Positions 26,925-64,000 of a stretch of DNA of 64,000 nt are shown here, in pieces. Each line of letters begins with the position of its first letter. The stretch's first letter is position 1. The translations under genes and the position numbers were made by a program. The DNA is from Blepharisma stoltei ATCC 30299 (taxonomy: Eukaryota; Protista; Ciliophora). Location: NCBI GenBank assembly GCA_965603825.1, contig CBFDEM010000009.1, forward strand, positions 124,001 to 188,000, given 5' to 3'. Under the pieces are notes generated by a model that worked only from the letters and a program-made list of their open reading frames with translations, did not search any database and was not told the origin of the DNA.

Positions 26925-26944
26925 GATAAAATATAAATTATAAA

Positions 26945-30505: not shown

Positions 30506-33500
30506 ATGCTAATAAGGTCTTTTATTCTAATAGCTTTCGTGAGCTCTTTAAATCTTCGCAAAAACTTAGGGAGTCTTTATTTAACAGAAGGTGAGCCATA
30601 TGATCTTCTTTTATCAGACTACTTTTCTGGAGACAACTTATCGTTTTCAATAGCAGACACCAACATGACTAATAACTCTGCAAAAATAGAAAATCAATGC
30701 GATTTTCATCATTTATCTACGACTCCCTATGAAAAGCTAGAGAAATCTTGGCCCTCTTGGAATGCTCAGCCTTTTATAATGTGGCAAGATATCAAGGTTC
30801 AAGTTATTGTGGGATTCAACCAAAATTATTTAGCTGCTTATAAATTTTCGGCGTTAACAGAAGAATCAAAGCTTATTTGAAGTACAACTCTAAGTACAGA
30901 GCACAAAAATTCTCAAATTCAAGCAATTGCGCCACTGAGAGCTAATTATGGCGTCAATTATCTGGCTGTATTAATAAAACAGCAAGAAAGCAATGGTTTA
31001 TGAAGAAATGATATATATATGATTAAAGTGCAGGATGGCTATATTTTCCACGACCCTGAAAAATTAAATTTAAATGAAATTGCCTACGCTTCAAAAATTG
31101 TAATGGGGCATGGAAATATGCATAAGTATTTTCCCATCTATTGCGAATTTCATAAAATTTCAAGCATTCCTAATGTTTTAAATATTTATGAAATAAGTAA
31201 TTTTCATGAACCTATTTTAGTGCAATCTATTTCAAATTATGAGAAAATAGCATCTATGAGCAGTTCTCTTTCTATAAGAAGTATCTTAACAGCTACTCAG
31301 CATATGTACATTTTAGATTCAAATTATGGTGTTATTTCTTTTTATATAACCTGGCCATTAGAAACTTTTGAAGAAGAATTAAACATAAATTTAAGTTATT
31401 TCGGAGAACTCTATTCAATGGAATTTACAGATTTATGAAAAATGATAATAAAGGCTAGCTCAGGAATCGTAGTAATTGAAAGATTTGGAGGAAAGCTAGG
31501 AATAAGAAGATTTTGGAAAAATCAAGAAAAAGGCATGTGAATCCAGGGATATGAATGCCATAACTACTATTTCCTTCAATCATCAAGTGGAATATTGTCG
31601 ATATTTTCCATATCTAAAGAAAATCAATTCGAAGCTACTTATAAAATTAATTTGAAGAGTTTAGATAATCATGGTGATAGAAATATCCCACGCATATTTT
31701 GTGATAGAGAAAAAAACTCATATTACTTCCAAAGATTTGGAGAAGAGGGACTTAAAGCTTATAGTATTAATTTAAAAGAATGAAAGCTAAGAATTTTAGG
31801 AGACTTATTTTATGTGAAGGTTACAGCAAAAGACGATGACAGCCACGAAATATCAGATATTTTAAACGTCATTTCAATTCCAAAAAATTCTGATAAGATT
31901 TTTGCACTAGAAAAGGGGCGACTAAAAGTGCCTGAGCCGATAGATTTACAAATATATGAAAAAAACTCAATAATATTATTCTCTCCCTCCACTTATTTTT
32001 CAGGACCAAACCTTACATGTGAGTTTATTTTCCCATATTCTGAAAAATTCAAATATGAAATTTCTAATCTAACCAGAATAGAATTAGGGAAAAGCATAAC
32101 CTCTCCTGATGGTCTTCGAAATTTTCTAGTTGCTGAATTAATATTTTATTATTTTTATGATAATAAAGTTGAGTTAGAAGATATCAACTATTTCAGAACT
32201 ACTCTAAGTATAACAAACCCAATAAGAATGTTGGAAAGTGGTGGAAATTATGTGATTTATTCAAATCCAAGTGAAAATATATTTCTTATATCAACCCTTT
32301 TATCTGAAGGTCGAACGCTGAATTTATTAGAAGAAATGGAATCAGAGATTGATTGCATGCTTTTTGATTTCCATAATAACTGATTACTATGTGGAAATAG
32401 CGAAAAAATTAATATTTATAGTTGGAGTGGGCTTTGAAAAAATATATTTTCTTTAACTGAGATTATGGATCAAATTAATTTTAAGTTAGAAATTGCTGAT
32501 GCTTTTCTTAGCAATAATAATGGCTTTATTAATATACTTGACAGAAATTTTGGAGCATTTGTTATCAATATGTTTGAGAGGCAAATTAAATTCGCATTAA
32601 GAACGAAAGGAATATTTAAAATTTTGATACTAGAAGAAAGAAAAATGGGACTTATTTATGAAGACAAAGCTGAAATTTATAATTCTCTTTTTCAACTTGA
32701 AAAAACTATATTGTTTAAAGCAGTGGGGCCACTTACAAATGCTTTTGTAGAACATTCCATTATTTTTATACAAATAGGCACAATTTTTTATGTATACAAT
32801 CCAAGTCTATTGTGACATGATGCATTAGTCTATTCATTTGAAATCCAAAACCCAGGGATCATTTCTTGTGGACGAAATAGTTGAAATGAGTTATTGATTG
32901 CCAATTATAATCCAGAAGCAAAACTTATTGAAATATACAAGAGCCCATTTCCAAGTAAAAATGTTTTTCCTCCTGCTTATGAAATTAGCATAATTGCTGA
33001 TGACATTGATACTTTACAAAGCTCAAGCTATAATGAAAGTTTTTCAGTAATTGCATATAATGCTCATGACAAAATGGAAGCCAATTTTTCATTATTGTTG
33101 CACGTTGATGGGAACTTCCCATGAATAGAAAATGACAAATTAGTTCTTCATGAAAATCTACCTTATACTAATAGATTTGAGGTAGATTTAAGCGACTCAT
33201 TTTATGGACAATATTTGAATATGAGTTTGAATATCAATGGAATTAATATTCATAATCAAACATCAGAAATTTTACCAGCTTTCGTACCGAAAAGAGTAGA
33301 AGTTGTAGGAGAATATGAAGCAAAAAATAACTGAATGAAAGACCATATTATTCTTCCCCACACAGAAATAGCTTTGATAGCCAGTAATAATGGTTTTCTT
33401 TTTGTGAACTCAACAAGCTTTAACAATGAAGAAAAATTTTTGAATATTTCTGAGCATACTAACCTCAAAAGTTTGACTTGCTCTTTAGTCGAATCCTTTC

Positions 33501-34735
33501 CGCATACAATTAAAAATTTGGCATTAATAGTTACATCTTGCACTTATCAGACTGCAAGTGATCATCTTTTTGTTAAAACAGTGAGAGAATTTGCTCTCAA
33601 AAATGCACTTATTTTGTGGGAAATCGATTTTATTAGCTTAAAAATTACAAATTATAGCTTATTAAATATTGCTGCGGGACCATGATACTTTAAAATTGCC
33701 CCACTTGCTGAACTTGACTTTGAGCTAATGGTTGTCATGGGTGATAATAAGGTATTTGATTATAATGATATTTTACGATTTAGAGGGAAATGAATTGAAA
33801 ATCTCATAACCATTCAGCTTTTAGAAACTATAAATTTCTTTTCATTAGATATTCCATCGTTTTCGCCTGTGTCACTTGACTACAAGGTAAAAAATTCTCA
33901 AACTTCTTACTGATATCTAGCAGACAAAAAATATGGAATTAGAGTTTTAGAAACTAATAATAACCAAAGAAGCCGTTTGGTAGGAGAGCTTCCATATCTA
34001 AATATTCATAGCAATTTCATAGCATTTGGTATTTGTGGAGATATTTTATATCTTTCTTCATTTATGTCAGCAATATTGTCTTATAAGATAAAAGACTACA
34101 TTTATTTTGAAAAAGACTCTGATTATAATATTTTGAAATGATCAGAAGGTGCCTATATTGGAGCACATAGTCCTATTATATGTTCAATGGATAATCGATA
34201 TTTTGTAGCCCACACATTCGATTCAAAATCCTTATTTCTAACTATTTTTGATACAAAATCTCAAAGCAATTCGAATCTCTACCCTAACTTTTATCTCTCT
34301 CTTCCTTATCTCGCTCCAGAGATACTAAAGACAAGGTTTATCACTGAAAATGAAATTTCTGCAATTTTTTATTCTAGTTTTACATATAGAAGACTCAAGA
34401 TAAATCAAAATTCTATAATATTTCCTAATATGAACATAAATGAGTATAATGAAATGATAAGTGAATGGGGAACTGAGAATTTTAGCATTACAATTACTGC
34501 AGAAAATATGAACAATGTTGTTAATTCTTCGACCATTTATTTTACACGTGAGATAGATTCAGAGACTTTAGCTCAAAGCAATTTTACCGATTGGCTGGTA
34601 AGATTTTTAATTCTTATTGCAATTCTAGCTGTTTTCGCAGCAAGCGTAAACTTTGCTAAAAGAATTGGGTCAAAGCATAAAATAGTTCAAGCATACTTTG
34701 ATGAAAAAGCATTGAGTGGCATAAATAAGAATTAA
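30506..34735 (+). CDS. Array gene A1: intact type-I membrane protein, 1409 aa
   Basis: All ORF-track fragments share one frame and are separated only by TGA. Signal peptide MLIRSFILIAFVSS, TM FLILIAILAVFAASV, short basic tail. Confidence 0.9.
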
Positions 34736-35072
34736 TATTATTTTATAATAAATAATGATGACGCAAATTATTTTAGATTTAAATTCTTAATTATCTACAT
34801 CAAGATTTTTGAAGCTAGGTTTAGATTTACCAGCTTATTTTATTTAATTCATATTTTTTCACCAGATTGTATTAGTAATTATGCAAATTTTAGTTTCCTG
34901 TAAGCCTAAAGCAGAATACAATGCATTTGGATAAATTATGTAGCAATGTATTTGAATCATCTGTAAATATTACTAAATATTTTTCTAGGATCTAGAAAAT
35001 TCATAGAAAACAATTTCGTTTCCATTGCTCTGTCTTTCGAAATCATTAAACTTTAACTATTGAAATAATTAA

Positions 35073-35877
35073 ATGCTGGTGAACTATTTATTTCTCTTTC
35101 CCGCTGTACTTCAATTATGATACAAAGGGAACTCGGATCAATTTACTTAACGGATGGAGAATCTTATGAGCTCTACTTATCAGACTATTTCAGTGGAAAC
35201 AATCTATCTTTTGCAAACTCAGATTCCAATATGACAACTGGTTCAGCAATTCTTGAAAATAAATGCGAATTTTATGCTATCATTCCTCCCATACCAAAAT
35301 TCAAGCTGAAATGAAACCTGAGCCCATTAATCTCTCAAACCTTTAATATCCTGAAGGCCATTTCCTGAATCATATGAAATCATAATATGGTATAATCTTA
35401 AATATATTGCTTTTTATAACTTTTCTTCAGAGCGAGGAGAAATGAAATGCTTTGGAATGGATTTATTGACACAGGGCAAAATGGAGAATATTCTCAAATA
35501 GAAGATATAAAAATTTATTCAACTGGTTATAGTCAAATTTCTTATGCTTTAATATGAATAAAGCAGCAGGAAATACACTTTTATGGAGAAACGATTTTTA
35601 TTATATGAATTTATTAAATTTATCAGCTCTAGAAAACCCAAAATGAGTGAGCTTCAGTGAAGCTACTTATGCCTCTAATATAATCCTAGCTCATGGGGCC
35701 ATTACCAACATAATTTCTATATATCTTGAATTCTCATCCTCACCTAGTGCAATTTATATATATAATATAACAAACACCAAAGAGCCTATCCTTAATCAAG
35801 TAATATCAGAGTATTATGGAATCTTAATAAGCAAACTTTCAGTTACTGGTATGTACATGGATTCAATGTATTTGTAC
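35073..35877 (+). pseudogene. Pseudo-B1: 5' ~800 bp of a B gene with frameshifts, truncated by deletion
   Basis: Homologous to 36599 onward. 1-nt deletion near 35108 (gtacttcaatt vs gtactttcaatt) plus further indels; homology ends at 35877. Confidence 0.9.
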
Positions 35878-35908
35878 CAATTTTTAATATTTTGAATTTT
35901 TGGTTAAG

Positions 35909-36246
35909 TCAAGATAAATCAAAATTCTTTAATATTCCCAAATATGAACAAAATTGAATATTATGAGATGATAAGCAAATGGGGAACTAAGAATTTCAGC
36001 ATTACAGTTACTGCAGAAAATATGAACAATGCTGTTAATTCTTCGACCATTTACTTTACACGCGAGATAAATTCAGAGACTTTAGCTCAAAGCAATTTAT
36101 TAGATTTTGCCTATTGGCTAGTAAGATTTTTAGTTCTTATTGCAATTCTTGATATTTTCGCAGCAAGCGTAAACTTTGCTAAAAGAATTGGGTCAAAGCA
36201 TAAAATAGTTCAAGCATATTTTGATGAAAAAGCATTGAAGACATAA
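35909..36246 (+). pseudogene. 3' relic of an A gene (membrane-proximal region, TM and tail) joined to pseudo-B1
   Basis: Matches A1 from ~34395 (tcaagataaatcaaaattct) through the stop and the following A-B spacer. Confidence 0.9.
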
Positions 36247-36507
36247 AACAAGAATTAATATTATTTTATAGTAAATATTGATGACACAAATTATTTTAGA
36301 TGTAAATTCTTAATTATTTGCATCAAGATTTTTGAGGCTAGGTTTTAGATTCAACAACTTATTTTATTTAATTCATATTTTTTCACCAGATTGTAGTAGT
36401 AATTATGCAAATCTTAGTTTCTTGTAAGCTTGAAGCAGGACACAATGCATTTGGATCAATTATACCGCAATGTATTTGAGTCATCTGCAAAAAACACTAG
36501 GAAATAT

Positions 36508-36598: not shown

Positions 36599-39500
36599 AT
36601 GCTGGTGAGATATTTATTTCTCTTTCCCGCTGTGCTTTCAATTATGATACAAAGGGAACTCGGATCAATTTACTTAACGGAAGGAGAATCTTATGAGCTA
36701 TACTTATCAGACTATTTCAGTGGAAACAATTTATCTTTTGCAATCTCAGATTCCAATATGACAACTGGTTCAGCAGCACTTAAAAATAAATGCGAATTTG
36801 AGATGCTAGAATTTGTCCCATACCAAAATTCAAGCTGAAATGAAACCTGAACCCATTCATCCCTCAAGCCTTTAATATCCTGAAGCCCAATTCTTGGACC
36901 ATATGAAATCATAATATGGTATAATCTTAAATATATAGCTTTTTATAACTTTTCTTCGGAGCGAGGAGAAATTGAAATGCTTTGGAATGGATTTATTGAC
37001 GCAGGGCAAAATGGAGAATATTCTCAAATAGAAGATATTAAAGTTTATTCAACTGGCTATGGTCAAATCTCTTACGCTTTAATATGAGTAAAACAGCAGG
37101 AAAATACACTTGTATGGAGAAACGATTTTTATTATATGGATTTATTAAATTTATCAGCTCTAGAAAACCCAAAACGAGTGATCTTTAGTGAAGCTACTTA
37201 TGCCTCTAATATAATCCTAGCTTATGGGGAGATTAGCAACATAATTTCTATTTATCTTGAATTCTCATCCTCACCTAGTGCAATTTATTTATATAATATA
37301 ACAAACGTTGAAGAGCCTATCCTTAATCAAGTAATATCAAATTATTATGGAATCTTAATAAGCAAACTCTCAGTTGCTAGTATGTATATGAATTCAATTT
37401 ATTTGTACGTTCTTGATACAAATTTTGGACTTATTAAGTATAGTATGTCTAGTGTTCGGGATAGATTTTTTAAAGAAAATGAATGAACTTATTATGGTTA
37501 TGTTGGGACTCTCAGTTCTATGTGAGAATTTTTTTTTGAATCCATAGGAATTATTTCAAGCTCAGGAGTATTGTTTTTCAAAAGTCCGCTACAACAATCA
37601 TTATTAGGTTTTCTGGGAGGGAAAGAAATGAATTGGGAGAATGGTTGCCTTCAAATTATTGAAGATTATTACTTCGTGCAGTCTAGTAATGGAATTTTAT
37701 CAGTTGCTTTAAGCTGAGCAGATCCGCTTCAAATATTATATAATATTGATATAAGTGATCTAGTTGGAGAAAGTTTTCAAGCTACTGGGCAATGAAGATT
37801 TTTTATAAATGAGGGCATATTTTATTTGAGGTTTGATACTGATGGCTTAAGGATTTATAAAACATACTTAGAAGAATGAAGCATTAAATTCTGGGGAAAT
37901 TCAACTTACTATGTCCAAATCACTGCAAAATCTCAAAATGATGGCATAATTTCCAGTACTTTATATGTCAACTCAATTACTCAAAATTCACAAGAAATTT
38001 TCCAAATCGACATGTATCGACCAGCTTCCATTTCTACTATCGAATTGATAGCTGACGAACAAAATGGAACCTATTTTTCTATAGTTTTGAATGATTATTT
38101 TTCGGGTCCAAATCTTGAATTCACAATAATTGATCTTCCTGACTTAAATACTTCAAGTTTCGAAATCATTACTATGAACAAACTGAAACTATATCAAAAT
38201 GTTTCTCTGTCAAGCAACATTACAAATTATTTAATTTCTGGAGCAAATATCGTATCTTTTTATGATAATAAAGTTATAGTTGATACAAGTTATGGCTCTA
38301 TACCTATAAATGCTACCAATCCTATAAAATTTTTATGAAGCAAAAGCTACGTCATATATTCTAAGCCAAACCAAAATTCATTTTTAATTATAAGTTCTTT
38401 TTACCCTGATGAAATCATTCAGAAAATTCCATCAGAAATAGATTGTATTTTCTTTTTAATTGATGATAGCTATCTTATATGTGCAGATTCGCATAAAATT
38501 GATGTATATTGCAATAATGATACCTATTACTATGACCCATTGGCTACTTTAACTGGTGAGCAATTCGAAAAAGGCTCTTCATGAAATATAACAGATCTAG
38601 CAATATCTTTCTCAGCTTATTCTACTCTCTACATTTATATAATAGATAATGATTTCGGTGCAGTTATTGTAGACTTAAATAGTATAGTTAAAGCAACTGA
38701 ACCTTTTAATTATTATGGAAAACTATCAGGTGCTAAAAATGTTATAAATACAGGAAGTGAAATTTGTTTTGTTTTTGAAAATTTTATTGAGATATATGGG
38801 TATTCTTTAGAATATTGGAAAACAATTTTGACAAATATGTATGAGCCTATTGTTGGAACATATGGGAAGTCAAATATGATTTATTTGATAACGAGTAATG
38901 CTTTATATATCTTTGATAGCGACCAACCATCACATAATTCTTTATTTTATACACTAACTATTAGCAATCCAAGCCTGCTATCATTTGGGCTATTTAACTG
39001 AGGAGATATGAGAATTGCTAATTTCAATCCTGATAAGCACTATGTTGAAATCTATACAAGCTCTTGCCCTAATAAAGAATTCTACGAGGGATGCTCATTT
39101 TATTATGGATTTTATATGAACATTGGCAACTCTGAGTACTTAAGAGACTTTTCTTTGCAAACAAGCATTTCAATAGCTGCATTTAATAAAGAAAATTTAT
39201 TAAAAGAAACTTTCCCTATAAATTTGGTAATTAATGGGAATTTCCCTTGTTATCAAAAAGAAGAAAATTGAGAAAATAATAAGAATATCCCATATAACGA
39301 GAGATACGAATTAGATTTAAGTAAATTTTTTGAGGGGCAAAATATTTTGATGACTTTGTATGTTAATGGAAATTACTCTTTCAATGAAACAGTAGAAAAC
39401 TGGCCTGCAATTATTCCTCAGCGAACTGAATTACTGGGAAGATACGATTTGAATAAACATTATGGTAAAACTAATCATATTATTATACCCAATACAGAGA

Positions 39501-40879
39501 TCGCTGTAATATTGTCTTTTTCTGAATTATTCATAATCGATGCTACTATGCTGACGAATAAAGTTATGGTTTTGAACTTAACTGAGATTTCAAATATTAC
39601 AGATTTGATATGTAATTTTATGGATGTTTTCCCTCACACACAAAATAATCTCGCTTTATTAATAACTTCATGTGCTTATAGAATTCCAGAAGCAATTAAA
39701 TATAAAAGCACAACCACTTATATTTCAGAATTTGTTTATGCTATTATTCTATGAGAATTAGATTATGTAAATTTTGAAATAATAAAATATAGGCTCCTTA
39801 ATGCATATAGTGATCATAATTATCTAAAAGCTGCCCCTCTTGATGCTCAAAGTTTTGAGATTTTAGCATTTTATATTGACAATTCAGCTCCAAATTATAT
39901 AAATAACATTTACAGATATAGTGGAAGATGAGAGATTAATGATATTAGCATTAGTCAATGTGAAGTCATAAATTATTTTTCTTTGGGTTTAAATTCATTC
40001 TATGCTCTTCTAGCTGAATTCATTGTGAAAGACTCTGAAACTGCTTATTGATATATAATTGACGACCAATATGGAATAAGAATTATACAAACTAGTAAAA
40101 ATTCAACAAGTATCTTAGTAGGTGGACTTCATGTCGAACTCAATTATTATTTTGTAAATTTTGGATTATGAGGAGATACACTTTATATAGCATGTGGAAA
40201 ATGAATGAAATCATTTAAATTAAGATCTTACACGAGTCTAGAAGAAGATTTGAATTATGGTGCTTACGAGTCACCAGAATCTGATTATTTATTTTTGCTA
40301 AATAATGTTGTTTCTTCAAAAGATAATAGATATATTGCATGCCCTGTTTGAAGGAGCGATCTAGGGTTATTGATTAGAATATGAGACACAAAAGCAAAGA
40401 ATTCATCTAATATAATATCAGAAATCTACGCCTCAGAAATAAATACTCTTTTATATCCAGTCAGTATGCAGTTTATTGGCAATTCAATACTTACATTCTA
40501 TATTAGCCATGAGAATGAATATAGAAGTTATAAAATTAATGAAAATTATTTGATTTTCCCTAAAATGAGCAAAGAAGAGTACTCAGAAATGACTAATTTG
40601 TGGGGAACAAAGTCGTTTTATTTGTATATTATTGCAGAAAATTCCAATGGAAAGGTTTCCTCAAAGTATCTTTATTTTAATAGAGAGGTCAGAGGAAAGA
40701 AAAGTGATAATTATTGATGGATTTGGGTTTTAGTTTCTATAGCAATTGTTGCTTGCATCATTGTAGGAGGGCTTTATATTAGAAAACTGTTGAAAGCCCA
40801 TAGACGTCGATCTTTAGAGTTAATTCTTATGAGAGAAATTCATAATAAAGAGGGTTTACAAGACACAGAGTTAAATTAA
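36599..40879 (+). CDS. Array gene B2: intact type-I membrane protein, 1426 aa
   Basis: One frame with only TGA interruptions. Signal MLVRYLFLFPAVLS, TM WWIWVLVSIAIVACIIVGGLYI, tail RKLLKAHRRRSLELILMREIHNKEGLQDTELN. Confidence 0.9.
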
Positions 40880-41872: not shown

Positions 41873-44800
41873 ATGCTAATAAGCTCTTTTATTCTCGTAG
41901 CATTCGTGAGCTCGTTAAATCTACGCAAAGAATTAGGGAATCTTTATTTAACAGAAGGTGAGCCATATGATCTTCTTTTATCAGACTACTTTTCTGGAGA
42001 CAACTTATCGTTTTCCATAGCAGACACCAACATGACTAATAACTCTGCAAGAATAGAAAATCAATGCGATTTTAATCATTTATCTACGATTCCATATGAA
42101 AAGCTAGAGAAATCTTGGCTCTCTTGGGATGCTCAGCCTGTTGTAATGTGGCAAGATATAAAGTTACAAGTCATTGTGGGATTCAATCAAAATTATTTAG
42201 CTGCTTATAAATTTTCGGCGTTAACAGAAGAATCAAAGCTTATTTGAAGTACAACTCTAAGTACAGAGCACAAAAATTCTCAAATTCAAGCAATTGCGAC
42301 ACTGAAAGCTAGTCATGGTGATTATCATCTGGCTGTGTTAATAAAGCAGCAAGAAAGCAATGATTTATGAAGAAATGATATATATATGATTAAAGTGCAG
42401 GATGGCTATATTTTCCACGACCCTGAAAAATTAAATTTAAATGAAATTACCTACGCTTCAAAAATAGTAATGGGAAATGGAAGTTCGTATAAGTATTTTC
42501 CCATCTATTGCGAATTTCATAAAACCTCAAGCATTCCTAATGTTTTGTATATTTATGAAATAAGTAATTTTCATGAACCAATTTTAGTGCAAGCTATTTC
42601 AAATTATGAAAAAATAGTATTTATGAGTAATTCTCTTTCTATAAGAAGTATTTTAACAGCTGCTCAATATATATACATTTTAGATTCAAATTATGGTGTA
42701 ATTTCTTTTTATAAAACCTGACCGTTAGAAATTTTTGAAGAAGAATTAAACATAAATTTAAGTTATTTCGGAGAACTCTATTCAATGGAATTTACAGATT
42801 TTGGAAAAATGATAATAAAAGCTAGCTCAGGAATCATAGTAATTGAAAGAGTGGTTAGAAAGCTAGGATTAAGAAGATTTTTGAAAAATCAAGAAAAAGA
42901 CTTATGAATCCAAGGATATGAATGCCAAAACTACTATTTCCTTCAATCAGCTAGTGAAATGTTGTCGATATTTTCCATATCTAAAGAAAATCAAGTCGAA
43001 ATCACTTATAAAATTAATTTGAAGAGTTTAGATATTCATGGTGATAGAAATATCCCACACATACTTTGTGATATAGAAAAAAATTCATATTGCTTCCAAA
43101 GATTTGAAGAAGAGGGACTTAAAGCTTATAGAATTAATTTAAAAGAATGAAAACTAAGAATTGTAGGAGACTTATTTTATGTGAAGGTTACAGCAAAAGA
43201 CGATGAGAGCCATGAAATATCAGATATTTTAAACGTCATTTCAATTCCAAAAAACTCAGATAGGATTTTGGCACTAGAAGAGGGACGAATAAAAGTGCCT
43301 GAGCCTATAGATCTATGAATAAGTGAAAAAACCTCAATGCTATATTTCTTTCCTGCCACTTATTTTTCAGGACCAAACCTTAAATATGAGTTTATTTTCC
43401 CGTATTCAGAAAAATTCAAATATGAAATTTCTAATATAACCAGGTTAGAATTAGAAGAAAGCAGAACCTCTCCTGATGGTCTTCGAAAATTTTTAGTTTC
43501 TGAATCAATATTTTATTATTTTTATGATAATAAAATTGAGTTAGAAAAAATCGACTATTTCAGAATCACTTTAAATATAACAAGCCCAATAAGAATGTTG
43601 GAAAATAGTGGATACTATGTGGTTTATTCAAATCCAAGTGAAAATATATTTCTTATATCAACCCTTTTATCTGATGGTCGAACGCTGAATTTAGTCGAAG
43701 AAATGGAATCAGAGATTGATTGCATGCTTCTTGATTTCTATAATAGCTGATTACTATGTGGAAATAGCGAAACAATTAACATTTATAGTTGGAGTGGGTT
43801 TTGAAAAAAATTATTTTCTTTAACTGAGATTATGGACCAAATCAATTTTAAGTTAGAAATAGCTGATGCTTTTCTTAGCAAGGATAATGGGTTTATTTAT
43901 ATACTTGACAGAAATTTTGGAGCTTTAGTTATCAGTATGTTTGAGAGGCAAATTAAATTCGCATTAAGAACGAAAGGAATATTTAAAATTTTGATACTAG
44001 AAGAAAGAAAAATGGGGCTTATTTATGAAGACAAAGCTGAAATTTATAATTATCTTTTTCAACTCGAAAAAACTATATTTTTTAAAGCAGAGGGACCACT
44101 TACAAATGCTTTTGTGTATCAATCCATTATTTTTATACAAATAGGCGCAATTTTTTATATATATTATCCAAGTCAATTGTCACATGATGCATTGGCTTAT
44201 TCATTTGAAATCCAAAGCCCAGGAATCATTTCTTATGGACGAAATAGTTGGTATGAGTTATTGATAACCAACTATAATCCAGATGCAAAACTTATTGAAA
44301 TATACAAGAGCCCATTTCCAAGTAAAGATGTTTTCCCTCCTGTTTATAAAATTAGCATAATTGCTGATGACATTGATAGTTTACAGAGCTCATGCTATAA
44401 TGAAAGTTTTTCAGTGATTGCATATAATGCTTATGACAAAATGGAAGCCAATTTTTCATTATTGTTGCAAATTGATGGGAACTTCCCATGAATAGAAAAT
44501 GACAAATTAGTTATTCATGAAAATTTACCTTATAATAGTAGATTTGAGGTAGATTTAAGCGACTCATTTCATGGGCAATATTTAAATATGAGTTTGAATA
44601 TCAATGGAATTAATATTAATGATCAAACATCAGAAATTTTACCAGCATTTATACCGAAAAGAGTAGAAGTTGTAGGAGAACATCAAACAAAAAATAATTG
44701 AATGAAAGACCATATTATTCTTCCCCGCACAGAAATAGCTTTGATAGCCAGTAATAATGGTTTTCTTTTTATGAACTCAACAGGCTTTAACAACGAAGGA

Positions 44801-45790
44801 AAATTTTTGAATGTTTCTGAACATACTAATCTCAAAAGCTTGACTTGTTCCTTAGTTGAATCCTTTCCACATGAAATTAAAAATTTGGCATTAATAGTTA
44901 CATCTTGCACTTATCGGACTGCAAGTGATCAACTTTTTGTGAAAACAGTGAGAGAATTTGCTCTCAAAAATGCACTCATTTTGTGGGAAATCGATTTTAT
45001 TAGCTTAAAAATTACAAATTATATCTTATTCAGCATTGCTGCAGAGCCATGATGCTTGAAAATTGCTCCACTTACTGAACTTGACTTTGAGCTAATGGTT
45101 GTCATGGGTGATAATAACATATTTGATTATAATGATGTTTTAAGATTTAGAGGAAAATGAATTGAAAATCTTATAACCATTCAGCTTTTAGAAACTATAA
45201 ATTTCCTTTCATTAGATGTTCCATCGTTTTCCCCTGTGTCACTTGATTACAAGGTAAAAAATTCTCAAACTTCTTACTGATATCTAGCAGACAAAAAATA
45301 TGGAATTAGGGTTTTAGAAACTAGTAATAGCCAAAGAAGTTATTTGGTAGGAGAGCTTCCATATCTAAATGTTCATAACTATTTCATAGCATTTGGTCTT
45401 TGTGGAGATATTTTATATGTTTCTTCATCTATGTCAGCAATAGTGTCTTATAAGATAAAAGACTATATTTATTTTGAAAAAGACTCTGATTATAATATTT
45501 TGAAAGGATCAGAAAGTGTCTATATTGGAGCACATAGTCCTATTATATGTTCAATGGATAATCGATATTTTGCAGTCCACACATTCAATTCAGAATGCTT
45601 ATTTCTAACAATTTTTGATACAAAATCTCAAAGCAATTCGAATCTCTACCCTAACTTTTATCTCTCTCTCCCTAATCTCGCTCCGATGATGGTAAAAGCA
45701 AGATTTATCAATGAAAATGAAATTTCTGCAATTTTTTATTCTAGTTTTACATATAAAAGACTCAAGGTAAACCAAAATTCTTTAATATAA
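41873..45790 (+). CDS. Array gene A2: 1305-aa ORF ending at a premature TAA before the TM helix (soluble ectodomain or young pseudogene); relic continues to 46099
   Basis: Frame intact to TAA 45788 (TTT/TTC in other copies); second TAA at 46052 in the tail relic. Confidence 0.75.
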
Positions 45791-46315
45791 ACAAATATAA
45801 ACAAAATTGAGTATGATGAGATGATAAGCAAATGGGGAACTAAGAATTTCAGCATTACAATTACTGCAGAAAATATGAACAATGCTGTTAATTCTTCGAC
45901 CATTTATTTTACACGTGAGATAGATTCAGTGAATTCAGTTCAAAGCAATTTATTAGATTTTACCTATTGACTGATAAGATTTTTAATTCTTATTTCCATT
46001 TTAGCTGTTTTCGCAGCAAGCGTAAACTTTGCTAAAAGAATCGGGTCAAAGTAAAAAATAATTCAAGCATATTTTGATGAAAAAGCATTGAAGACATAAA
46101 ATAAGAATTAATATTATTTTATAATAAATAATAATGACGCAAAATATTTTAGACTTAAATTCTTTATTATCTACATCACGATTTTTGAGGCTAGGTTTAG
46201 GTTTAACAGCTTATTTTATTTAATAGATTTTTCACCAGATTGTCATAGTAACTATGAAAATCTTAGTTTCCTGTAAGCTTGAAGCAGGACACAATGCATT
46301 TGGAAATTCCCAATT

Positions 46316-52300: not shown

Positions 52301-53540
52301 ATCCTTTCCACATACAATTACAAATTTGTCTTTAATAGTTACATCTTGCACTTATCGAGCTTCAAGTGATCATCTTTTCGTAGAAACAGTGAAAGAATTT
52401 GCTCTCGAAAATGCACTTATTTTGTGGGAAATCGATTTTATTGGCTTAAAAATTACTAATTATAGCTTATTCAGTATTGCTGCAGGACCATGATGCTTGA
52501 AAATTGCTCCACTTACTGAACTTGACTTTGAACTAATGGTTGCCATGGGTGATAATGTCATTTCTGATTATAATGATGTTTTAAGATTTAGAGGAAAATG
52601 AATTGAAAATCTTATAAGCATTCAGCTTTTAGAAACTATAAATTTCCTTTCATTAGATGTTCCATCGTTTTCCCCTGTGTCACTTGATTACAAGGTAAAA
52701 AATTCTCAAACTTCTTACTGATATCTAGCAGACAAAAAATATGGAATTAGGGTTTTAGAAACTAGTAATAACCAAAAAAGCCATTTGGTAGGAGAGCTTC
52801 CATATCTACACCATCATAATTATTTTATATCATTTGGTATTTGTGGAAATATTTTATATGTTTCTTCATCTTTGTCAGCAATAGTGTCTTATAAGATAAA
52901 AGACTATATTTATTTTGAAAAAGACTCTGATTATAATGTTTTGAAAGGATCAGAAGGTATCTATATTGGAGCACATAGTCCTATTATATGTTCAATGGAT
53001 AATCGATATTTTGCAGTCCACACATTCAATTCAAAATCCTTATTTCTAACTATTTTTGATACAAAATCTCAAAGCAATTCGAATCTCTACCCTAACTTTT
53101 ATCTCTCTCTCCCTAATTTCGCTCCGGCGGTGCTAAAAACAAGATTTATTACTGAAAATGAAATTTCTGCAATTTTTTATTCTAGTTTTACATATAAAAG
53201 ACTCAAGGTAAACCAAAATTCTTTAATATTTCCAAGTATGTACAAAATGGAGTATAATGAAATGATAAGCAAATGGGGAACTGAGAATTTCAGCATTACA
53301 ATTTCTGCAGAAAATATGAACAATGCTGTTAATTCTTCCATAATTTATTTTACACGTGAGATAGATTCAGGGACTTTAGCTCAAAGCAATTTATTAGATT
53401 TTACCTATTGACTGATAAAATTTTTAATTCTTATTGCAATTCTAGCTGTTTTCGCAGCAAGCGTAAACTTTGCTAAAAGAATTGGGTCAAAGCATAAAAT
53501 AGTTCAAGCATATTTTGATGAAAAAGCATTGAAGGCATAA
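49308..53540 (+). CDS. Array gene A3: intact type-I membrane protein, 1410 aa
   Basis: All fragments are in one frame with TGA-only breaks; ends AYFDEKALKA*. Confidence 0.88.
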
Positions 53541-53889: not shown

Positions 53890-56800
53890 ATGCTGGTGAG
53901 GTATTTATTTCTCTTTCCCACTGTACTTTCAATTATGATACAAAGGGAACTCGGATCAATTTACTTAACGGAAGGAGAATCTTATGAGCTATACTTATTA
54001 GACTATTTCAGTGGAAACAATCTATCTTTTGCAATCTCAGATTCCAATATGACAACTGGCTCAGCAATGCTTGAAAATAAATGCGAATTTGAGATGCTAG
54101 CATTCCTCCCATTTCAAAATTCAAGCTGAAATGAAACCTGAACCCATTCATCTCTCCAGCCTTTAATATCCTGAAAGCCGATTTTTGAATCATATGAAAT
54201 CATAATATGGTATAATCTTAAATATGTAGTTTTTTATAACTTCTTTTCAGAGAGAGGAGAAATTGAAATGCTTTGAAATGGATTTATTGACTCAGAGTAT
54301 CTAAGTCCTCAAATAGAAGATATTAAAATTTATTCAAGTGACCATGGCCAAATCTCTTACGCTCTAATATGAGTAAAGCAGCAGGAAAATGCTCTTATAT
54401 GGAGAAACGATTTTTATTATATGAATTTATCAAATTTATCAGCTCTAGTAAATCCAAAATGAGTAAACATCAGTGAAGCTACTTATGCCTCTAATATAAT
54501 CTTAACTCATGGGGCCATTAGCAGCATAACTTCTATTTATCTTGAATTCTCATCCTCACCTAGTGCAATTTATGTATATAATATAACAAACATTGAAGAG
54601 CCTATCCTTACTCAAGTAATATCAAAATATTATGGAATCTCAATAAACAAACTTTCAGTTGCTAGTATGTACATGGATTCTATCTATTTGTACGTTCTTG
54701 ATGCAAATTTTGGAGTTATTGGGTATAGTATGTTTAACTATCGGGGTAGATTTTTTACAGAATATGCATGAAATTATTATGGCTATGTTGGGACTCTCAG
54801 TTCTATGTGAAAATCTTATAATGACTGCCTGGGAGTAATTTCAAGCTCAGGAATATTGTTTGTCAAAAATTCGCTGCAGCAATTATCATTCAGTTTTCTG
54901 GGAGGGGAAGGAATGAATTGGGAGAATGGTTGCCTTCAAATTATTGAAGATTATTACTTCGTGCAGTCTATTAATGGAGTTTTATCAGTTGCTTTAAGCA
55001 GAGCACAGCCGCTTCAAATATTATATAATATTGATATAAGAAATCTAATTGGAGAAAGATTTGAAGCAACTGGACAATGGGGATTTTTTATAAATGAGGA
55101 TATATTTTATTTGAGGTTTGATATGGATGGCTTAAGGATTTATAAAGCATACTTAGAAGAATGAAGAATTAAAATTTGGGGAAATTCAACTTACCATATC
55201 CAAATCACTGCAAAAGATCAAAATGATGACATAATTTCCAATAATTTATATGTCAACTCAATTCCTCAAAAATCACAAGAAATTTTGCAAATTGACATGT
55301 ATCGGCCAACTTCCATTTCTCCTATCGAATTGATAGCTGACGGACAAAATGGAACCTCATTTTCTATAGTTTTGAATGATTATTTTTCGGGTCCAAATCT
55401 TGAATTCACAATAGTTGATCTTCCCGACTTAAATACTGCTAGTTTCGAAATCATTAGTATGAACAAACTGAAATTATATCAAAATGTTTCTCTGTCAAGC
55501 AACATTACAAATTTTGTAATTTCTGGAGAAAATATCGTATCTTTTTATGATGATAAAGTTATTATAGTTGATCGAAATGATGACGATATAATTATAGATG
55601 TTACCAATCCAATAAAATTTTTATGAAGCAGAGACTACATCATATATTCTAAACCAAATCAGAATTCGTTTTTAATTAGCACATATCTTTCTTTTGAAGG
55701 AAAAATTCAGGACATTCCATCTGAAATAGATTGTATTTTCTTTTTAATTACTAATTGGAATCTTATATGCGCAGATTCGCATCAAATTGACATATATTAC
55801 AATAATGATACCTATTACTATGCTCCATTGGTTACTTTAACTGGTGAGCAATTTGAAAAAGGCTCTTCTTGAAATATAACAGATCTAACGGTATCTTTCT
55901 CAACCCCATCTATACTTTACATTTATATAATAGATAATGATTTAGGTGCAGTTATTATAGACTTAAAAAGTATAATTGAAACAACTGAACCTTATAATTA
56001 TTATGGAAAAGTATCAGGTGCTAAAAATGCTATAAATACAGGAAGTGAAATTTGTTTTGTTTTTGAAAATTTCATTGAGATATATGGATATTCTTTAGAA
56101 TATTCGAAAACAATTTTGACAAATATATATGAGCCTATTGTTGGAACATATGGAGAGTCAAATATGATTTATTTGATAACTAGTAGTGCTTTATATATCT
56201 TTGATAGCGGCCAGCCCTCACATAATTCTTTATTTTATACATTGCCTATTAGCAATCCAAGCCTGCTATCATTTGGGTTATTTAACTGAGGAGATATGAG
56301 AATTGCTAATTTCAATCCTGATAAGCACTATGTTGAAATCTATACAAGCCCATGCCCTAATAAAGAATTCAATGAGGGATGCTCATTTTATTATGAATTT
56401 TATATGCACATTGGCAACTCTGATTACTTAAAAGACTTTTCTTTGCAAACAAGCATTTCAATAGCTGCATTTAATAAAGAAAATTTATTAAAAGAAACTT
56501 TCCCTATAAATTTGATAATTAACGGAAATTTCCCTTGGTATAAAGAAGAAAATTGAGAAAATAATAAAAATATTCCATATAATGAGAGATACGAATTAGA
56601 TTTAAGTAAATTTTTTGAGGGGCAAAATATTTTGATGGCTTTGTCTGTTAATGGAAATTACTCTTTCAATGAAACAGTAGATAACTGGCCTGCAGTCATT
56701 CCTCAGCGAACTGAATTACTGGGAAGATACGATTTGAATAAACATTATGGTAAGACTAATCATATTATTATACCCAATACAGAGATCGCTGTAATATTGT

Positions 56801-58164
56801 CTTTTTCTGAATTATTCATAATCGATGCTACTGGGTTGACGAATAAAGCTTTGGTTTTGAACTTAACTGAGATTTCAAATATTACAGATTTGATATGCAA
56901 CTTTATGGAAGTTTTCCCTCACACACAAAATAATCTCGCTTTATTAATAACATCATGCATTTATAGAATTCCAGAAATAATTGAATATAAAAGCACAACC
57001 ACCTATATTTCGGAATTTGCTTATGGTATTGCTCTATGAGAGTTAGATTATATAAATTTTGAAATAATTAAATACAAACTCCTTAATACATATAGCGATC
57101 ACAATTATCTAAAAGTTGCCCCTCTTGATGCTCAAAGTTTCGAGATTTTGGCTTTTTATATTGACGATACAACTCAAAATTATATAAATAACATTTAAAG
57201 ATTTAATGGAAGATGAGAGATTAATGATATTAGCATTAGTCAATGTGAAGTCATAAATTATTTTTCTTTGGGTTTAAATTCATTCTATGCTCTTCTCGCT
57301 GAATTCATTGTGAAAGACTCTGAAACTGTTTATTGATATATAATAGACAACCAATATGGAATAAGAATTATACAAACTACTAAAAGCTCTCCAAGTATCT
57401 TAGTAGGTGGACTTTATATCGAACTCCAATATTACTTTGTAAATTTTGGCTTATGAGGAGATGCACTTTATATAGCATCTGGAGGATGAATGAAATCATT
57501 TAAATTAAGATCTTACACTAGATTAGAAGAAGATTTGAATTATGGTGCTTACGAGTTGCCAGGATTTAATTATTTATTTGTGCTAAATAATGCTGTTTCT
57601 TCAAAAGATAATAGATACATTGCATGCCCTGTTTGAAGGAGCGATCTAGGGTTATTAATTAGAATATGAGACACAAATGCAAAGAATTCATCTAATATTA
57701 TATCAGAAATCTATGCCTCACAATTGTATACTCTTATATATCCAGTCAGCATGCAGTTTATTGGAAATTCAATACTTACACTCTATATTAGTTATGGAAA
57801 TGAATATTGAAGTTATAAAATTAATGAAAATTATTTGATATTCCCTAAAATGAGCAAAGAAGAGTACTCAGAAATGACTAATTTGTGGGGAACAAACTCG
57901 TTTTATTTGTATATTATTGCAGAAAATGCCAATGGAGAGGTTGCCTCTAAGTATCTTTATTTTAATAGAGAGGTCAGAGGAAAGAAAAGTGATAATTATT
58001 GATGGATTTGGGTTTTAGTTTCTATAGCAATTGTTGCTTGCATCATTGGAGGGGGGCTTTATATTAGGAAACTGTTGAAAGCCCATAGACGTCGATCTTT
58101 AGAGTTAATTCTTATGAGAGAAATTCATAATAAAGAGGGTTTACAAGACACAGAGCTAAATTAA
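53890..58164 (+). pseudogene. Array gene B4: full-length frame with a single nonsense codon (TAA 57196-57198; TAC in B2/B3); would give a 1102-aa TM-less product
   Basis: No frameshifts seen; downstream TM and tail preserved. Confidence 0.75.
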
Positions 58165-58935
58165 TTGCTTTGCAAAGCCATTAAGCAAATTTAATCTTAG
58201 TAGTAATATAGCTAGATAATGTTTGGCTGATTCAGGCAGTTTCTTTTCACTTGTATTTGTAGATTTAAAGAAAAAACCCTATTTTTATTGAAGAAGATTC
58301 GAGCTTATATATTTTCAAAGAGCCTACTCTTCTATTACACAAATATTGCATATTCAAGTATCTTATAGATTTATTTTTATACTAAAATTTAAAAACATAT
58401 TTTAATGGTATAAGGCTTCTGAACCGACTGTTTCTTAAAGTATTTATAAGAAACCTGACCAAGTATAGCCTTTCAAACTTATTCTTAGATGTGCATTATG
58501 CCAGGTAGATATCGGATCTATGTTTATGAAATTTATACTAATTTAGATTTACAAAAGTGATTATTTTTACTTTATAGTTAATTTTCTTATAAAATGATAC
58601 ATTAAAAGGCATTAAGGCTATATTTTAATGCTTGAGAAAAATTATAATAATCACTTAAATGCATCAATAATTATTATTTTAGTGTAATAAGCCTCGTTTA
58701 TATACAAGTTTTCATAATTGCGTATGAGAGTTTTCTGTAATTTTTGGTTGTTCGCAAGACAATAAATTAGCATACTCATAAATTTAAAGCTATATAGTTG
58801 AGCTACTAGTTAAAATTGTAAAAAAAATAAATTCCATTGAAATAAGCATATTTAAATAAAAAAGAATTTTCTTTTAAATTATTCACCATTTGATTAGCAT
58901 TTAAATCACCTCATTCATCGACTTTAATTTAATAA

Positions 58936-61900
58936 ATGCTAATAAGCTCTTTTATTCTCGTAGCATTCGTGAGCTCGTTAAATCTACGCAAAGAATTAGG
59001 GAGTCTTTATTTAACAGAAGGTGAGCCATATGATCTTCTTTTATCAGACTACTTTTCTGGAGACAACTTATCGTTTTCAATAGCAGACACCAACATGACT
59101 AATAATTCTGCAAGAATAGAAAATCAATGCAATTTTCATCATTTATCTACGATTCCATATGAAAAGCTAGAGAAATCTTTGCCCTCTTGGGATACTCAGC
59201 CTGCTGTAATGTGGCAAGATATACAGGTTCAAGTTATTGTGGGATTCAACCATAATTATTTAGCTGTTTATAAATTTTCGGTGTTAAAGAAGAAACAAAG
59301 CTTATTTGAAGTACAACTCTAAGTACAGAGCACAAAAATTCTCAAATTCAAGCAATTGCGCAACTGAGAGGTAGCCGTGGTGACAATTATCTGGCTGTAT
59401 TAATAAAACAGCAAGAAAGCAATGGTTTATGAAGAAATGATATGTATATGATTAAAATTCAGGATAACTATATTTTCCACGACCCTGAAAAATTAAATTT
59501 AAATGAAATTACCTACGCTTCAAAAATTGTAATGGGGCATGGAAGTATGCATAAGTATTTTCCCATCTATTGCGAATTTCATAAAAATTCAAGTATTCCT
59601 AATGTTTTGTATATTTATGAAATAAGTAATTTTCATGAACCTATTTTAGTGCAAGCTATTTCAAATTATGAGAAAATAGTATTATGAGCAGCTCTCTTTC
59701 TATAAGAAGTATCTTAACAGCAACTCAATATATATATATTTTAGATTCAAATTATGGTGTTATTTCTTTTTATAAAACCTGCCCATTAGAAATTTTTGAA
59801 GAAGAATTAAACATAAATTTAAGTTATTTCGGAGAGCTTTATTCAATGGAGTTTACAGATTTTTGAAAAATGATAATAAAAGCTAGCTCAGGAATCATAC
59901 TAATTGAAAGAACGGGTGGAACGCTAGGGTTAAGAAGATTTTTGAAAAATCCAGAAAAAGACATATGAATCCAGGGATATGAATTTCAAAACTACTATTT
60001 CCTTCAATCGGCTAGTGGAATATTGTCGATATTGTCCATATCTAAAGAAAATCAAGTCGAAGTCACTTATAAAATTAATTTGAAGAGTTTCGATAATAAA
60101 ATCCCACACATATTATGTGATAGAGAAAAAAATTCATATTACTTCCAAAGATTTGAAGAAGAGGGACTTAGAGCTTATAGAATTAATTTAAAAGAATGAA
60201 AACTAAAAATAGCTGGAGGCTTATTTTATGTAAAGGTTACAGCGAAAGACAATGATAGTTAAGAAATATCAGATATTTTAAACGTCATTTCAATTCCAAA
60301 AAATTCTGATAGGATTTTGGCACTAGAAGAAGGGCGAATAAAAGTGCCTGAGCCTATAGATTTACAAATAAATGAAAAAAACTCAATGATATTATTCTCT
60401 CCCTCCATTTATTTTTCAGGACCAAACCTTACATATGAGTTTATTTTCCCATATTCAGAAAAATTCAAATATGAGATTCTAATCTAACCAGGCTAGAATT
60501 AGAAGAAAGCAGAACCTCTCCTGATGGTCTTCGAAATTTTCTAGTTGCTGAATCAATACTTTATTATTTTTATGATAATAAAATTGAATTAGAGGGAAAG
60601 TATGATTTCAGAGTCACTTTAAATATAACAAGCCCAATAAGAATGTTGGAAAATAGTGGATACTATGTGGTTTATTCAAGTCCAAGTGATAATATATTTC
60701 TTATATCAACCCTTTTATCTGATGCTCGAACGCTGAATTTATTAGATGAAATGGAATCAGAGATTGATTGCATGTTTTTTGATTTCTATAATAATTGATT
60801 ATTTATATTTGGAGTGGGTTTTGAAAAAAAGTATTTTCTTTAACTGAAATTATGGATCAAATTAATTTTAAGTTAGAAATAGCTGATGCTTTTCTTAGCA
60901 AGGATAATGGCTTTATTTATATACTTGACAGAAATTTTGGAGCATTTGCTATCAGTATTTTTAAGATGAATAACTTAATTAAATTCGCATTAAAAACGAA
61001 AGGAATATTAAAATTTTGATACTAGAAGAAAGAAAAATGGGGCTTATTTACAAAGACAAAGCTGAAGTTTATAATTATCTTTTTCAACTCGAAAAAACTA
61101 TATTTTTTAAAACAGTGGGACCACTTACAAATGCTTTTGTGTATCAATCCATTATTTTTATACAGATAGGTACAGTTTTTTATGTATACAATCCTAGTCT
61201 ATTGTCACATGATGCATTGGTCTATTCATTTGAAATCCAAAGCCCAGGAATCATTTCTTGTGGATGATATCGTTGAAATGAGTTATTGATTACCAATTAT
61301 AATCCAGATGCAAAACTTATTGAAATATACAAGAACTCATTTCCAAGTAAAAAGGTTTTCCCTCCTGTTTATGAAATTAACATAATTGCTGATGATATTG
61401 ATAGTTTACAGAGCTTATGCTATAATGAAAGTTTTTCAGTGATTGCATATAATGCCCATGACAAAATGGAAGCCAATTTTTCATTATTGTTGCACGTTGA
61501 TGGGAACTTCCCATGAATAGAAAATGACAAATTAGTTCTTCATGAAAATCTACCTTATACTAATAGATTTGAGGTAGATTTAAGCGACTCATTTCATGGA
61601 CAATATTTAAATATGAGTTTGAATATCAATGAAATTAATATTCATGATCAAACATCAGAAATTTTACCAGCTTTCGTACCGAAAAGAGTAGAAGTTGTAG
61701 GAGAATATGAAGCAAAAAATAACTGAATGAAAGACCATATTATTCTTCCCCACACAGAAATAGCTTTGATAGTCAGTGAAAATGGTTTTCTTTTTGTGAA
61801 CTCAAAAGGTTTTAACGATGAAGAAAAATTTTTGAATATTTCTGAACATACTAATCTCAAAAACTTGGCTTGCTCTTTAGTCGAATCCTTTCCACATACA

Positions 61901-63089
61901 ATTAAAAATTTGGCATTAATAGTTACATCTTGCACTTATCGAGCTCCAAGTGATCATCTTTTTGTGAAAACAGTGAGAGAATTTGCTCTCAAAAATGCAC
62001 TTATTTTGTGGGAAATCGATTTTATTAGCTTAAAAATTACTAATTATAGCGTATTCAGTATTGCTGTAGGACCATGATGCTTGAAAATTGCTCCGCTTAC
62101 TGAGATAATGGTTGCAATGGGTGATAATAGCATATTTGATTATAATGATGTTTTAAGATTTAGAGGAAAATGAATTGAAAATCTCATAACTATTGAGCTT
62201 TTAGAAACTATAAATTTTCTTTCATTAGATATTCCATCGCTTTCCCCTGTGTCACTTGATTACAAAGTAAAAAATTCTCAAACTTCTTACTGATATCTAG
62301 CAGACAAAAATTATGGAATTAGGGTTTTAGAAACGAATAATAACCAAAAAAGCCGTTTGGTAGGAGAGCTTCCAATCTACATCATCATAACTATTTCATA
62401 CCATTTGGTCTTTGTGGAGATATTTTATATGTTTCTTCATCTATGTCAGCAATAGTGTCTTATAAGATAAAAGAATACATTTATTTTGAAAAAGACTCTG
62501 ATTATAATGTTTTGAAAGGATCAGAAGGTATCTATATTGGAGCACATAGTCCTATTATATGTTCAATGGATAATCGATATTTTTCAGTGCACACATTCAA
62601 TTCAGATACAAAATCTCAAATCAATTCGAATCTCTACCCTAACTTTTATCTCTCTCTCTCACTAATCTCGCTCCGAAAATGCTAAAAGCAAGATTTATCA
62701 CCGAAAATGAAATTTCTGCAATTTTTTATTCTAGTTTTACATATAAAAGACTCAAGATAAATCAAAATTCTTTAATATTTCCAAATATGAACAGAATTGA
62801 GTATAATGAAATGATAAATGAATGGGGAACTGAGAATTTCAGCATTACAATTTCTGCAGAAAATATGAACAATGCTGTTAATTCTTCGATCATTTATTTT
62901 ACACGCGAGATAAATGCAGAGACTTTGGCTCAAAGCAATTTATTAGATTTTACCTATTGACTGGCAAGATTTTTAATTCTTATTGCAATTTTAGCTTTTT
63001 TCACAGCAAGCGTAAACTTTGCTAAAAGAATTGGGTCAAAGCATAAAATAGTTCAAACATATTTTGATGAAAAAGCATTGAAGGCATAA
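58936..63089 (+). pseudogene. Pseudo-A4: full-length relic with multiple frameshifts, deletions and a stop
   Basis: Indels near 59287, 59680, 60476, 60803, 61008, 62103, 62374, 62606, 62660; TAA at ~60260. Confidence 0.92.
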
Positions 63090-63436
63090 AATAAGAATTA
63101 ATATTATTTTATAATAAATAATGATGACTCAAATTATTTTAGACTTAAATTCTTAATTATCTGCATCAAGATTTTTGAGGCTACGTTTTAGATTCAGCAG
63201 CTTATTTTATTTAATTACTATTTTTTCACCAAATTGTAGTAGTAATTGAAAATCTTAGTTCCTGTAAGCCTAAAGCAGGACACAATACATTTGGATAAAT
63301 AATATAGCAATGTATTTGAGTCATCTGTAAAAAATCACTAAATATTTTCTAGCATCTAGAAAATTCATAGAAAACAATTTCATTTCGATTGAATTGTCTT
63401 TCGAAATCATTAAACTTTAACTATTAAAATAATTAA

Positions 63437-64000
63437 ATGCTGGTGAGGTATTTATTTCTCTTTCCTGCTGTACTTTCAATCATGATACAAAGGGAACTCG
63501 GATCAATTTACTTAACGGAAGGAGAATCTTATGAGCTATACTTATCAGACTATTTCAGTGGAAACAATCTATCTTTTGCAATCTCCGATTCTAATATGAC
63601 AGCTGGTTCAGCAATACTTGAAAATAAATGCGAATTTGAGATTCTAGCATTCCTCCCATTTCAAAATTCGAGCTGAAATGAAACCTGAGCCCATTCATCT
63701 CTCAAGCCTTTAATATCCTGAAGGCCAATTCCTGAATCATATGAAATCATAATATGGTATAATCTTAAATATATTGTTTTTTATAACTTTTCTTCTGAAC
63801 GAGGAGAAATTGAAATGTTTTGAAATGGATTTATTGACACAGGGGAAAATATAGAATATTCTCAAATAGAAGATATAAAAATTTATTCAAGTAACTATGG
63901 TCAAATCTCTTACGCTTTAATATGAGCTAAGCAGCAGGAAAATACACTTATATGGAGAAACAATTTTTATTATATGAATTTATTAAATTTATCAGCTCTA
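63437..64000 (+). CDS. Array gene B5, 5' part (runs off the window; intact so far)
   Basis: Open frame with TGA=Trp to the window end; same signal peptide as B2. Confidence 0.8.

Follow-up and report, generated by a model that had tools for sequence, protein, structure and literature searches.

The genome of the ciliate Blepharisma stoltei is generally marked by duplicated genes for transmembrane proteins that lie in clusters and include eroding pseudogenes (PMC9942806 SI); in it, orthogroups OG0000085, OG0000014, OG0000018/52, and OG0000019 form tandem membrane-protein clusters with decayed copies and dispersed offshoots. The 64,000-nucleotide stretch of the B. stoltei somatic genome analyzed here (the window; G000:C9:124001-188000) contains an array that shares these features, in which two paralogous genes, termed A and B, alternate along one strand. 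The orthogroups named above encode proteins with multiple transmembrane (TM) helices (ANF_receptor, PAS, LamG/malectin) that are mostly under 40% identical, whereas A and B encode single-pass proteins with a triple-propeller ectodomain, form a two-gene unit, and were duplicated recently (about 90% DNA identity); their family is not among the orthogroups described in PMC9942806 SI. The array probably arose within a receptor-like family of the Blepharisma lineage by duplication of an A-B segment and decay of the surplus copies, a birth-and-death process. Clusters of duplicated, eroding membrane genes had been described before in this genome; the novelty lies in the protein family, a lineage-restricted family of membrane proteins with about 18 long genes plus remnants, and in its three-propeller ectodomain.

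The assembly containing the window comprises 64 contigs and 41,464,486 bases; its size, contig number, and UGA=Trp code agree with the somatic genome of strain ATCC 30299 (PMC9942806), and the family proteins carry the NCBI name Blepharisma stoltei. With TGA translated as Trp, the + strand from 30506 to 64000 contains open frames of 1,100-1,430 codons, while translation with table 11 gives 73 stop-to-stop frames of at least 60 aa. Other genetic codes were rejected, as the long frames are open under TGA=Trp only. An earlier note on this DNA had described strictly alternating, co-oriented, intronless genes, and the retranslation bears this out; all of the motifs that it quoted are found in the A and B proteins. 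The NCBI gene calls for the array genes have lengths equal to those found here, and the calls for A2 and B4 stop at the same sites. The genes are arranged in five head-to-tail cassettes of 9-10 kb, each with A followed by B: A1-B1, A′-B2, A2-B3, A3-B4, and A4-B5 (Table 1). A sixth, partial copy, composed of an intact A0 gene and a 430-nt B stub, is inverted and 132 kb distant (C9:22334-17488). Cassette-scale DNA repeats of 4.7-9.2 kb are about 90% identical, spacers included, and copies of the same type share 90-94% of their DNA and 82-87% of their protein sequence. Over the full length, A and B have 32% identity, and their proposed status as ancient paralogs is supported. The A+B pair had also been considered the invariable unit of duplication, which holds in the A/B subfamily (six of six units, with the distant copy counted) but not in the whole family; the latter includes singletons and, on contig 55, a tandem doublet of one type that is 94% identical, so that single genes also duplicate.

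Seven of the 12 genes are broken, namely A2, B4, psiB1, psiA′, psiB3, psiA4, and the B0 stub. A2 and B4 had been listed as intact; both contain in-frame stops, the first of which in A2 sits within a short multi-base change. Introns were rejected as the cause of these stops, since the alignments have no 15/16-nt (intron-sized) insertion at either site. Homopolymer sequencing error was rejected for psiA4, in which most of the 1-nt deletions are located outside long runs and larger deletions are also present. The intact genes in the assembled sequence, A0, A1, A3, B2, and B5, each occupy a separate cassette; no cassette has both genes intact, and no two adjacent genes form an intact pair. This pattern is expected by chance with p = 0.2 and is thus no signal of selection, showing only that intact cis-pairs are not required. 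The trees of the copies are near star-like, and there is little sign of extensive gene conversion, long identical tracts being few and none longer than 216 nt. B4 and B5 are 98.9% identical at their 3′ ends (58000-58277 in B4), with a 216-nt identical run that possibly reflects recent gene conversion; the B tails are nearly invariant among copies.

Table 1. Features of the A/B array, in window positions
Feature	Position	Strand	Description
A1	30506..34735	+	intact, 1,409 aa; leader, three propeller modules, TM near 1363-1383, 25-aa tail
A-to-B spacer	34736..35072	.	about 337 nt; recurs in each cassette with about 10% divergence
psiB1	35073..35877	+	5′ 805 nt of a B gene; four frameshifting deletions
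Filler	35878..35908	.	junction of a roughly 8-kb deletion that joined psiB1 with the final part of the following A
psiA′	35909..36246	+	3′-terminal part (about 340 nt) of an A gene, with the TM and tail
B2	36599..40879	+	intact, 1,426 aa; TM near 1374-1394, 31-aa tail
A2	41873..46099	+	broken; TAA at codons 1306 (45788-45790) and 1394; the 1,305-aa open frame stops short of the TM helix
psiB3	46316..48791	+	lacks the first 1,822 nt; 20 nt inserted close to the 3′ end
A3	49308..53540	+	intact, 1,410 aa; modeled residues 14-930, propellers about 65-423 and 513-818
B4	53890..58164	+	broken by TAC>TAA in the third propeller (codon 1103, 57196-57198); product of 1,102 aa
psiA4	58936..63089	+	full-length pseudogene; six 1-nt deletions, a 28-nt deletion, a 2-nt insertion, in-frame deletions
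B5, 5′ part	63437..64000	+	gene intact, 1,425 aa; ends 3,714 nt past the window (position 67714)

The decay is also visible in germline-inclusive sequence. A record that combines the macronuclear (MAC) genome with internal eliminated sequences (IESs; GCA_914767885.1) is collinear with the window from 34034 to about 62400, save for 23 germline-limited pieces of 55-569 bp, many of which are related inverted-repeat elements and in none of which was family coding DNA found. The stops and frameshifts of the array are present in this germline-inclusive record as well. The record was scaffolded on the somatic assembly and captures eliminated pieces poorly when they exceed the length of a read (PMC9942856). 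B3 and B4 carry an IES at one and the same position, 90% identical between the two, and another is common to three A-B spacers; homologous IESs in several units indicate that the duplications happened in the germline. Both large deletion junctions (35875-35909 and 46304-46316) bear short filler DNA and germline-limited pieces (321 and 327 bp at the former, 119 bp at the latter), a coincidence which suggests that the large deletions may have started at sites of IESs or miniature inverted-repeat transposable elements. The 321- and 327-bp elements, which flank the filler, are TA-bound and free of family coding DNA.

The array invites comparison with the linked gene pairs of other ciliates. Tetrahymena MTA/MTB and Paramecium mtA share a furin-like Cys-rich repeat with 14 conserved cysteines (PMC7786109), and the Tetrahymena locus, like the one described here, comprises two linked paralogs of about 1,400-1,500 aa with large glycosylated ectodomains and an array of gene pairs. 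MTA and MTB are arranged head to head, contain five TM helices and seven β-sandwich domains in addition to the Cys repeat, and undergo programmed deletion. In contrast, A and B are all on the + strand, head to tail, with one C-terminal TM helix, at most 2-3 Cys per 100 aa, and three propellers, and their lesions already exist in the MAC-scaffolded germline record, in which only short non-coding pieces interrupt collinearity. A programmed locus of the Tetrahymena type, in which complete germline pairs would be reduced by developmental deletion to a chosen gene set, would suit a ciliate somatic genome in which arrayed gene pairs bear deletions, as well as the germline-limited pieces at both deletion junctions, but it is scarcely credible given the size and content of those pieces and the presence of the stops and frameshifts in the same record. 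No sign of programmed selection of a pair was seen in that record, from which very long pieces could escape.

Two spacers share an element of mixed fate. The B2-A2 spacer (41260-41550) contains a GC-rich insertion, about 270 nt long, that is not in the other spacers. Over its first 52 nt, this insertion matches a TA-bound element of 81 bp which, in the B4-A4 spacer (58579), is limited to the germline. The sequence of the 81-bp element is excised in that one copy and somatically retained in two, in the B2-A2 spacer and after B5.

The repeated segment with its spacers, the pseudogenes, the dispersed copies, and the relaxed selection are all features of birth-and-death arrays. In the proposed history, an ancient tandem duplication would have made A and B neighbors; at a far later time, the complete A-B segment of 9-10 kb would have been duplicated in the germline over a short period, giving about five tandem copies and one distant copy; and deletions, frameshifts, and nonsense mutations would since have eroded the surplus copies, so that three A genes and two B genes remain, under weak purifying selection. 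To explain the alternation, it is enough that a segment of two genes was duplicated in tandem. Selection was estimated between paralogs, not alleles, of one nearly homozygous strain, with few sequences. Values of dN/dS between copies (Nei-Gojobori method, NG86) are 0.33-0.58, compared with 0.65-0.76 in simulated neutral change, and the ratios of lineage-private nonsynonymous to synonymous changes (N:S), relative to the neutral expectation, are 0.56 for A (p = 4e-9) and 0.69 for B (p = 2e-4), both significantly below it. A and B are under weakly purifying selection. When N:S was computed by domain, no domain or region of A or B was above neutrality, the ratio in propeller 1 of B being near neutral (0.94). 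The broken A2 and A4 have N:S ratios like those of intact copies, which points either to a recent loss of these two genes or to weak constraint on all copies; relaxation is greatest in B4.

The proteins have the features of type I membrane glycoproteins. As judged by hydropathy and sequon counts (16-27 overall), each intact gene encodes a hydrophobic leader, an ectodomain with 16-21 N-glycosylation sequons, one TM helix, and a basic tail of 21-31 aa; the AlphaFold2 model also supports the TM helix. The earlier description of a leader, ectodomain, single TM helix, and short tail stands for the intact genes and fails for the broken A2, the product of which has no TM helix. The assignment of A and B as single-pass surface-type glycoproteins with a receptor-like ectodomain is thus supported. 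The short tail has no catalytic domain. Two overlapping AlphaFold2 models, of A3 (pLDDT 65; residues as in Table 1) and of residues 430-1436 of a B-like protein from contig 52 (pLDDT 74), were obtained from 10-row alignments, and both are all-β except for the TM helix. Structural alignment identifies two propellers in A3 (Z 17.1 for the first) and one at residues 956-1331 of the contig-52 protein (Z 27.9, rmsd 3.1). The matches are generic seven-bladed propellers, with integrin α heads tied among them. A YF-x-G-x-N-L motif is found before each propeller (near residues 40, 498, and 900), and a profile alignment matches module 1 with module 2 (E 6e-5). The strands that flank each propeller, together with ESM Atlas features that give immunoglobulin (Ig)/cadherin (He_PIG, cadherin-like) and propeller leads only (0.81 at best), suggest that each propeller is set into a split Ig-like sandwich, a topology based on the strand order of the models. 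The overall architecture comprises three β-propellers, each probably inserted in this way into an Ig/cadherin-like sandwich, followed by a TM helix and a short basic tail. The proteins would most likely be located on the cell surface or in the endocytic/secretory lumen, where the propeller faces could bind large external ligands, as expected of adhesion or capture receptors and not of signaling enzymes.

The nearest architectural analogue is ROS1/Sevenless, a single-pass receptor with three β-propellers between β-sandwich domains (PMC11743138) that ranks low in the Foldseek lists. Unlike ROS1/Sevenless, A and B have no kinase, no YWTD motifs were seen in them, and they have three sandwiches compared with nine fibronectin type III domains; with a TM-score of 0.14-0.15 and 8-9% identity, this is an architectural analogy, not homology. 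Similar to A and B, integrin α consists of a propeller, a β-sandwich stalk, one TM helix, and a short tail, and propeller 3 aligns with it at Z about 25. This match, however, is tied with dozens of unrelated WD40 propellers, integrin α has one propeller instead of three, and no integrin Pfam match was obtained. The contig-52 A-like protein carries the automatic UniRef name “ER membrane protein complex subunit 1”, which, with the propellers and the C-terminal TM helix, raises the question of a duplicated housekeeping family of the lumen, EMC1-like or a sortilin-like cargo receptor, in which a conserved hydrophobic-acidic tail motif could act as a sorting signal. Such an identity is very unlikely. 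Pfam gave no match for the pieces or for six full-length members, a sequence search of the PDB gave none, EMC1 and the Vps10 domain are not among the fold matches listed, and the family has three propellers, diverges fast, and has no relatives found outside Blepharisma-like ciliates. A match to a known housekeeping family, which the earlier note had said would count against its own interpretation, was not found in these searches.

The family appears to be narrowly distributed. Three word-based protein searches, of a sensitivity so low that even B was missed, were complemented by a hidden Markov model (HMM) search of 1.84 billion representatives, which yielded nine matches, seven of them from the B. 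stoltei genome. One of the other two is an MMETSP transcript that shares 71% identity with the contig-34 gene. The second comes from a Logan contig (SRR24908292, L061:6077-12505) of a different ciliate that also reads TGA as Trp; this contig encodes an intact 1,453-aa homolog, whose nearest relative is the contig-13 gene, and a decayed copy lies immediately upstream of it. These searches revealed no relatives outside Blepharisma-like ciliates, the short HMM profile (116 positions) limiting the reach beyond them; an ESM Atlas shape search stayed under a TM-score of 0.35, and no relative was found in JGI metagenomes. In the literature, no description of the family was found, nor of a three-propeller ectodomain in ciliates. 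The genome contains 13 further family genes: singletons on contigs 13, 24, 28, 34, and 54 and doublets on contigs 1, 52, 55, and 56, those on contigs 24, 28, 55, and 56 having been read in part only. One contig-56 gene matches only from profile position 349. The upstream gene of the contig-1 doublet (G000:C1:478203-482193) has a frameshift near 480115 and, like A2, a stop just before the would-be TM helix; it could represent decay or an anchorless form, and it entered one tree read through, with an X at the break.

Several observations weigh against the history of duplication and decay. Both types have been retained (three A and two B intact), and the confidence of both AlphaFold2 models is moderate. 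Both A (p = 0.011) and B (p < 0.001) have a cluster of amino acid changes at about residues 560-610; N:S in this patch is about neutral (0.90 and 0.96) and model confidence is lowest there, such that loose constraint explains the patch as well as diversification does. Finally, the order of A followed by B is found again on contig 52, where the genes share just 32-34% identity with those of the array; pure chance linkage would not need this recurrence. There, an A-like gene is followed on the same strand by a B-like gene, with an unrelated 327-aa gene between them. A is sister to the upstream contig-52 gene (support 97/97), and B groups with the downstream one (support 43). A clade of the two contig-52 genes was rejected in an approximately unbiased (AU) topology test (p-AU 0.031), and a clade of A and B was borderline but not rejected (p-AU 0.055). 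On these trees, the A-then-B arrangement probably predates the split that left 32-34% identity; the long branches and, within limited flanks, the lack of synteny around the contig-52 doublet weaken the case for such ancient linkage. This older doublet lends mild support to ancient linkage and is the strongest point in favor of the earlier note; five family members are unlinked singletons.

A linkage of this age would be in keeping with A and B being subunits of a cis-heterodimeric surface receptor, with an integrin-like logic, that have stayed linked since the ancient duplication. Any intact A might pair with any intact B, so the decay of single genes would be tolerated, and this arrangement is compatible with the duplication and decay described above, to which it adds a function. 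The sister grouping of A with the upstream contig-52 gene, the rejection of the contig-52 clade, and the survival of both types favor it, as does the tail motif LMxE(I/L/M), common to B and the downstream contig-52 gene and not present in A. The motif is, however, also found in a third subfamily and is thus ancestral; the grouping of B is poorly supported, the A+B clade was not rejected, an unrelated gene splits the contig-52 doublet, and five relatives are singletons. Moreover, old tandem neighbors often remain linked without interacting. On balance, a heterodimer is plausible but rather unlikely.

The earlier note had interpreted the array as a recognition locus. In its full form, this would be a polymorphic self/non-self, mating-pair, or prey/pathogen recognition locus with allele-matched A and B as ligand and receptor and the decayed copies as a reservoir of variation, on the model of Dictyostelium tgrB1/tgrC1. 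The receptor-like anatomy, the variable patch in propeller 2, and the near-neutral ratio in propeller 1 of B are in line with this, and the tgr locus is likewise a linked surface-protein pair with unit duplication and is also rich in partial duplicates (PMC12745789). In Blepharisma itself, a pair-formation barrier exists, the factor of which is not identified (PMC9866912), and the gamone 1 receptor is still putative (PMC10892320). The tgr pairs, however, diverge from one promoter, and one divergent intact pair is present in every Dictyostelium genome examined, whereas A and B are co-oriented, with no divergent promoter and no intact adjacent pair. Hydractinia Alr1/Alr2 have a tandem Ig-fold ectodomain, allelic hypervariability, and homophilic binding; the ectodomain of A and B, in contrast, is mostly β-propeller. 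The absence of an intact cassette, the head-to-tail orientation, the purifying selection with no region above neutral, the few and short identical tracts, the five singletons, the lack of MTA/MTB features, and the presence of the same lesions in the germline-inclusive record do not support a recognition locus, and the TGA-rich coding of Trp is an indirect hint of weak expression. This interpretation is improbable, and on present evidence the array is one of many surface-gene arrays in the genome and no better a recognition candidate than the others. Little credence can likewise be given to a combined proposal in which A and B would be halves of a heteromeric triple-propeller receptor, linked since the ancient duplication, with the propeller-2 patch varying to change specificity, and which could be the pair-formation factor or the gamone 1 receptor. 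Public conjugation RNA-seq data and reads of a second mating type exist, with which the family could be ruled in or out cheaply for these two Blepharisma components.

The usage of Trp codons differs between gene classes in the window. The TGA:TGG ratio is 4:24 in nine housekeeping-type genes compared with 51:28 in the A/B genes (p = 5e-6), and TGA usage may track expression level. The contig-28 paralog (G000:C28:106513-110979) has no TGA in 1,501 codons, with 18 TGG in the part read; its contig-54 sister, 70% identical, has 13 TGA and 9 TGG. The distant A0 gene and B0 stub are inserted in another tandem array (C9:3717-26568) of about ten genes of roughly 290 aa with an N-terminal DQNEIESKYLW-like motif, and a reverse-transcriptase-like open reading frame is found at C9:12452-13798, both having been recognized by eye. 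Within the window, on the - strand of 24452-26993, two close 14-3-3-like genes, one canonical and one divergent, were likewise recognized by eye.

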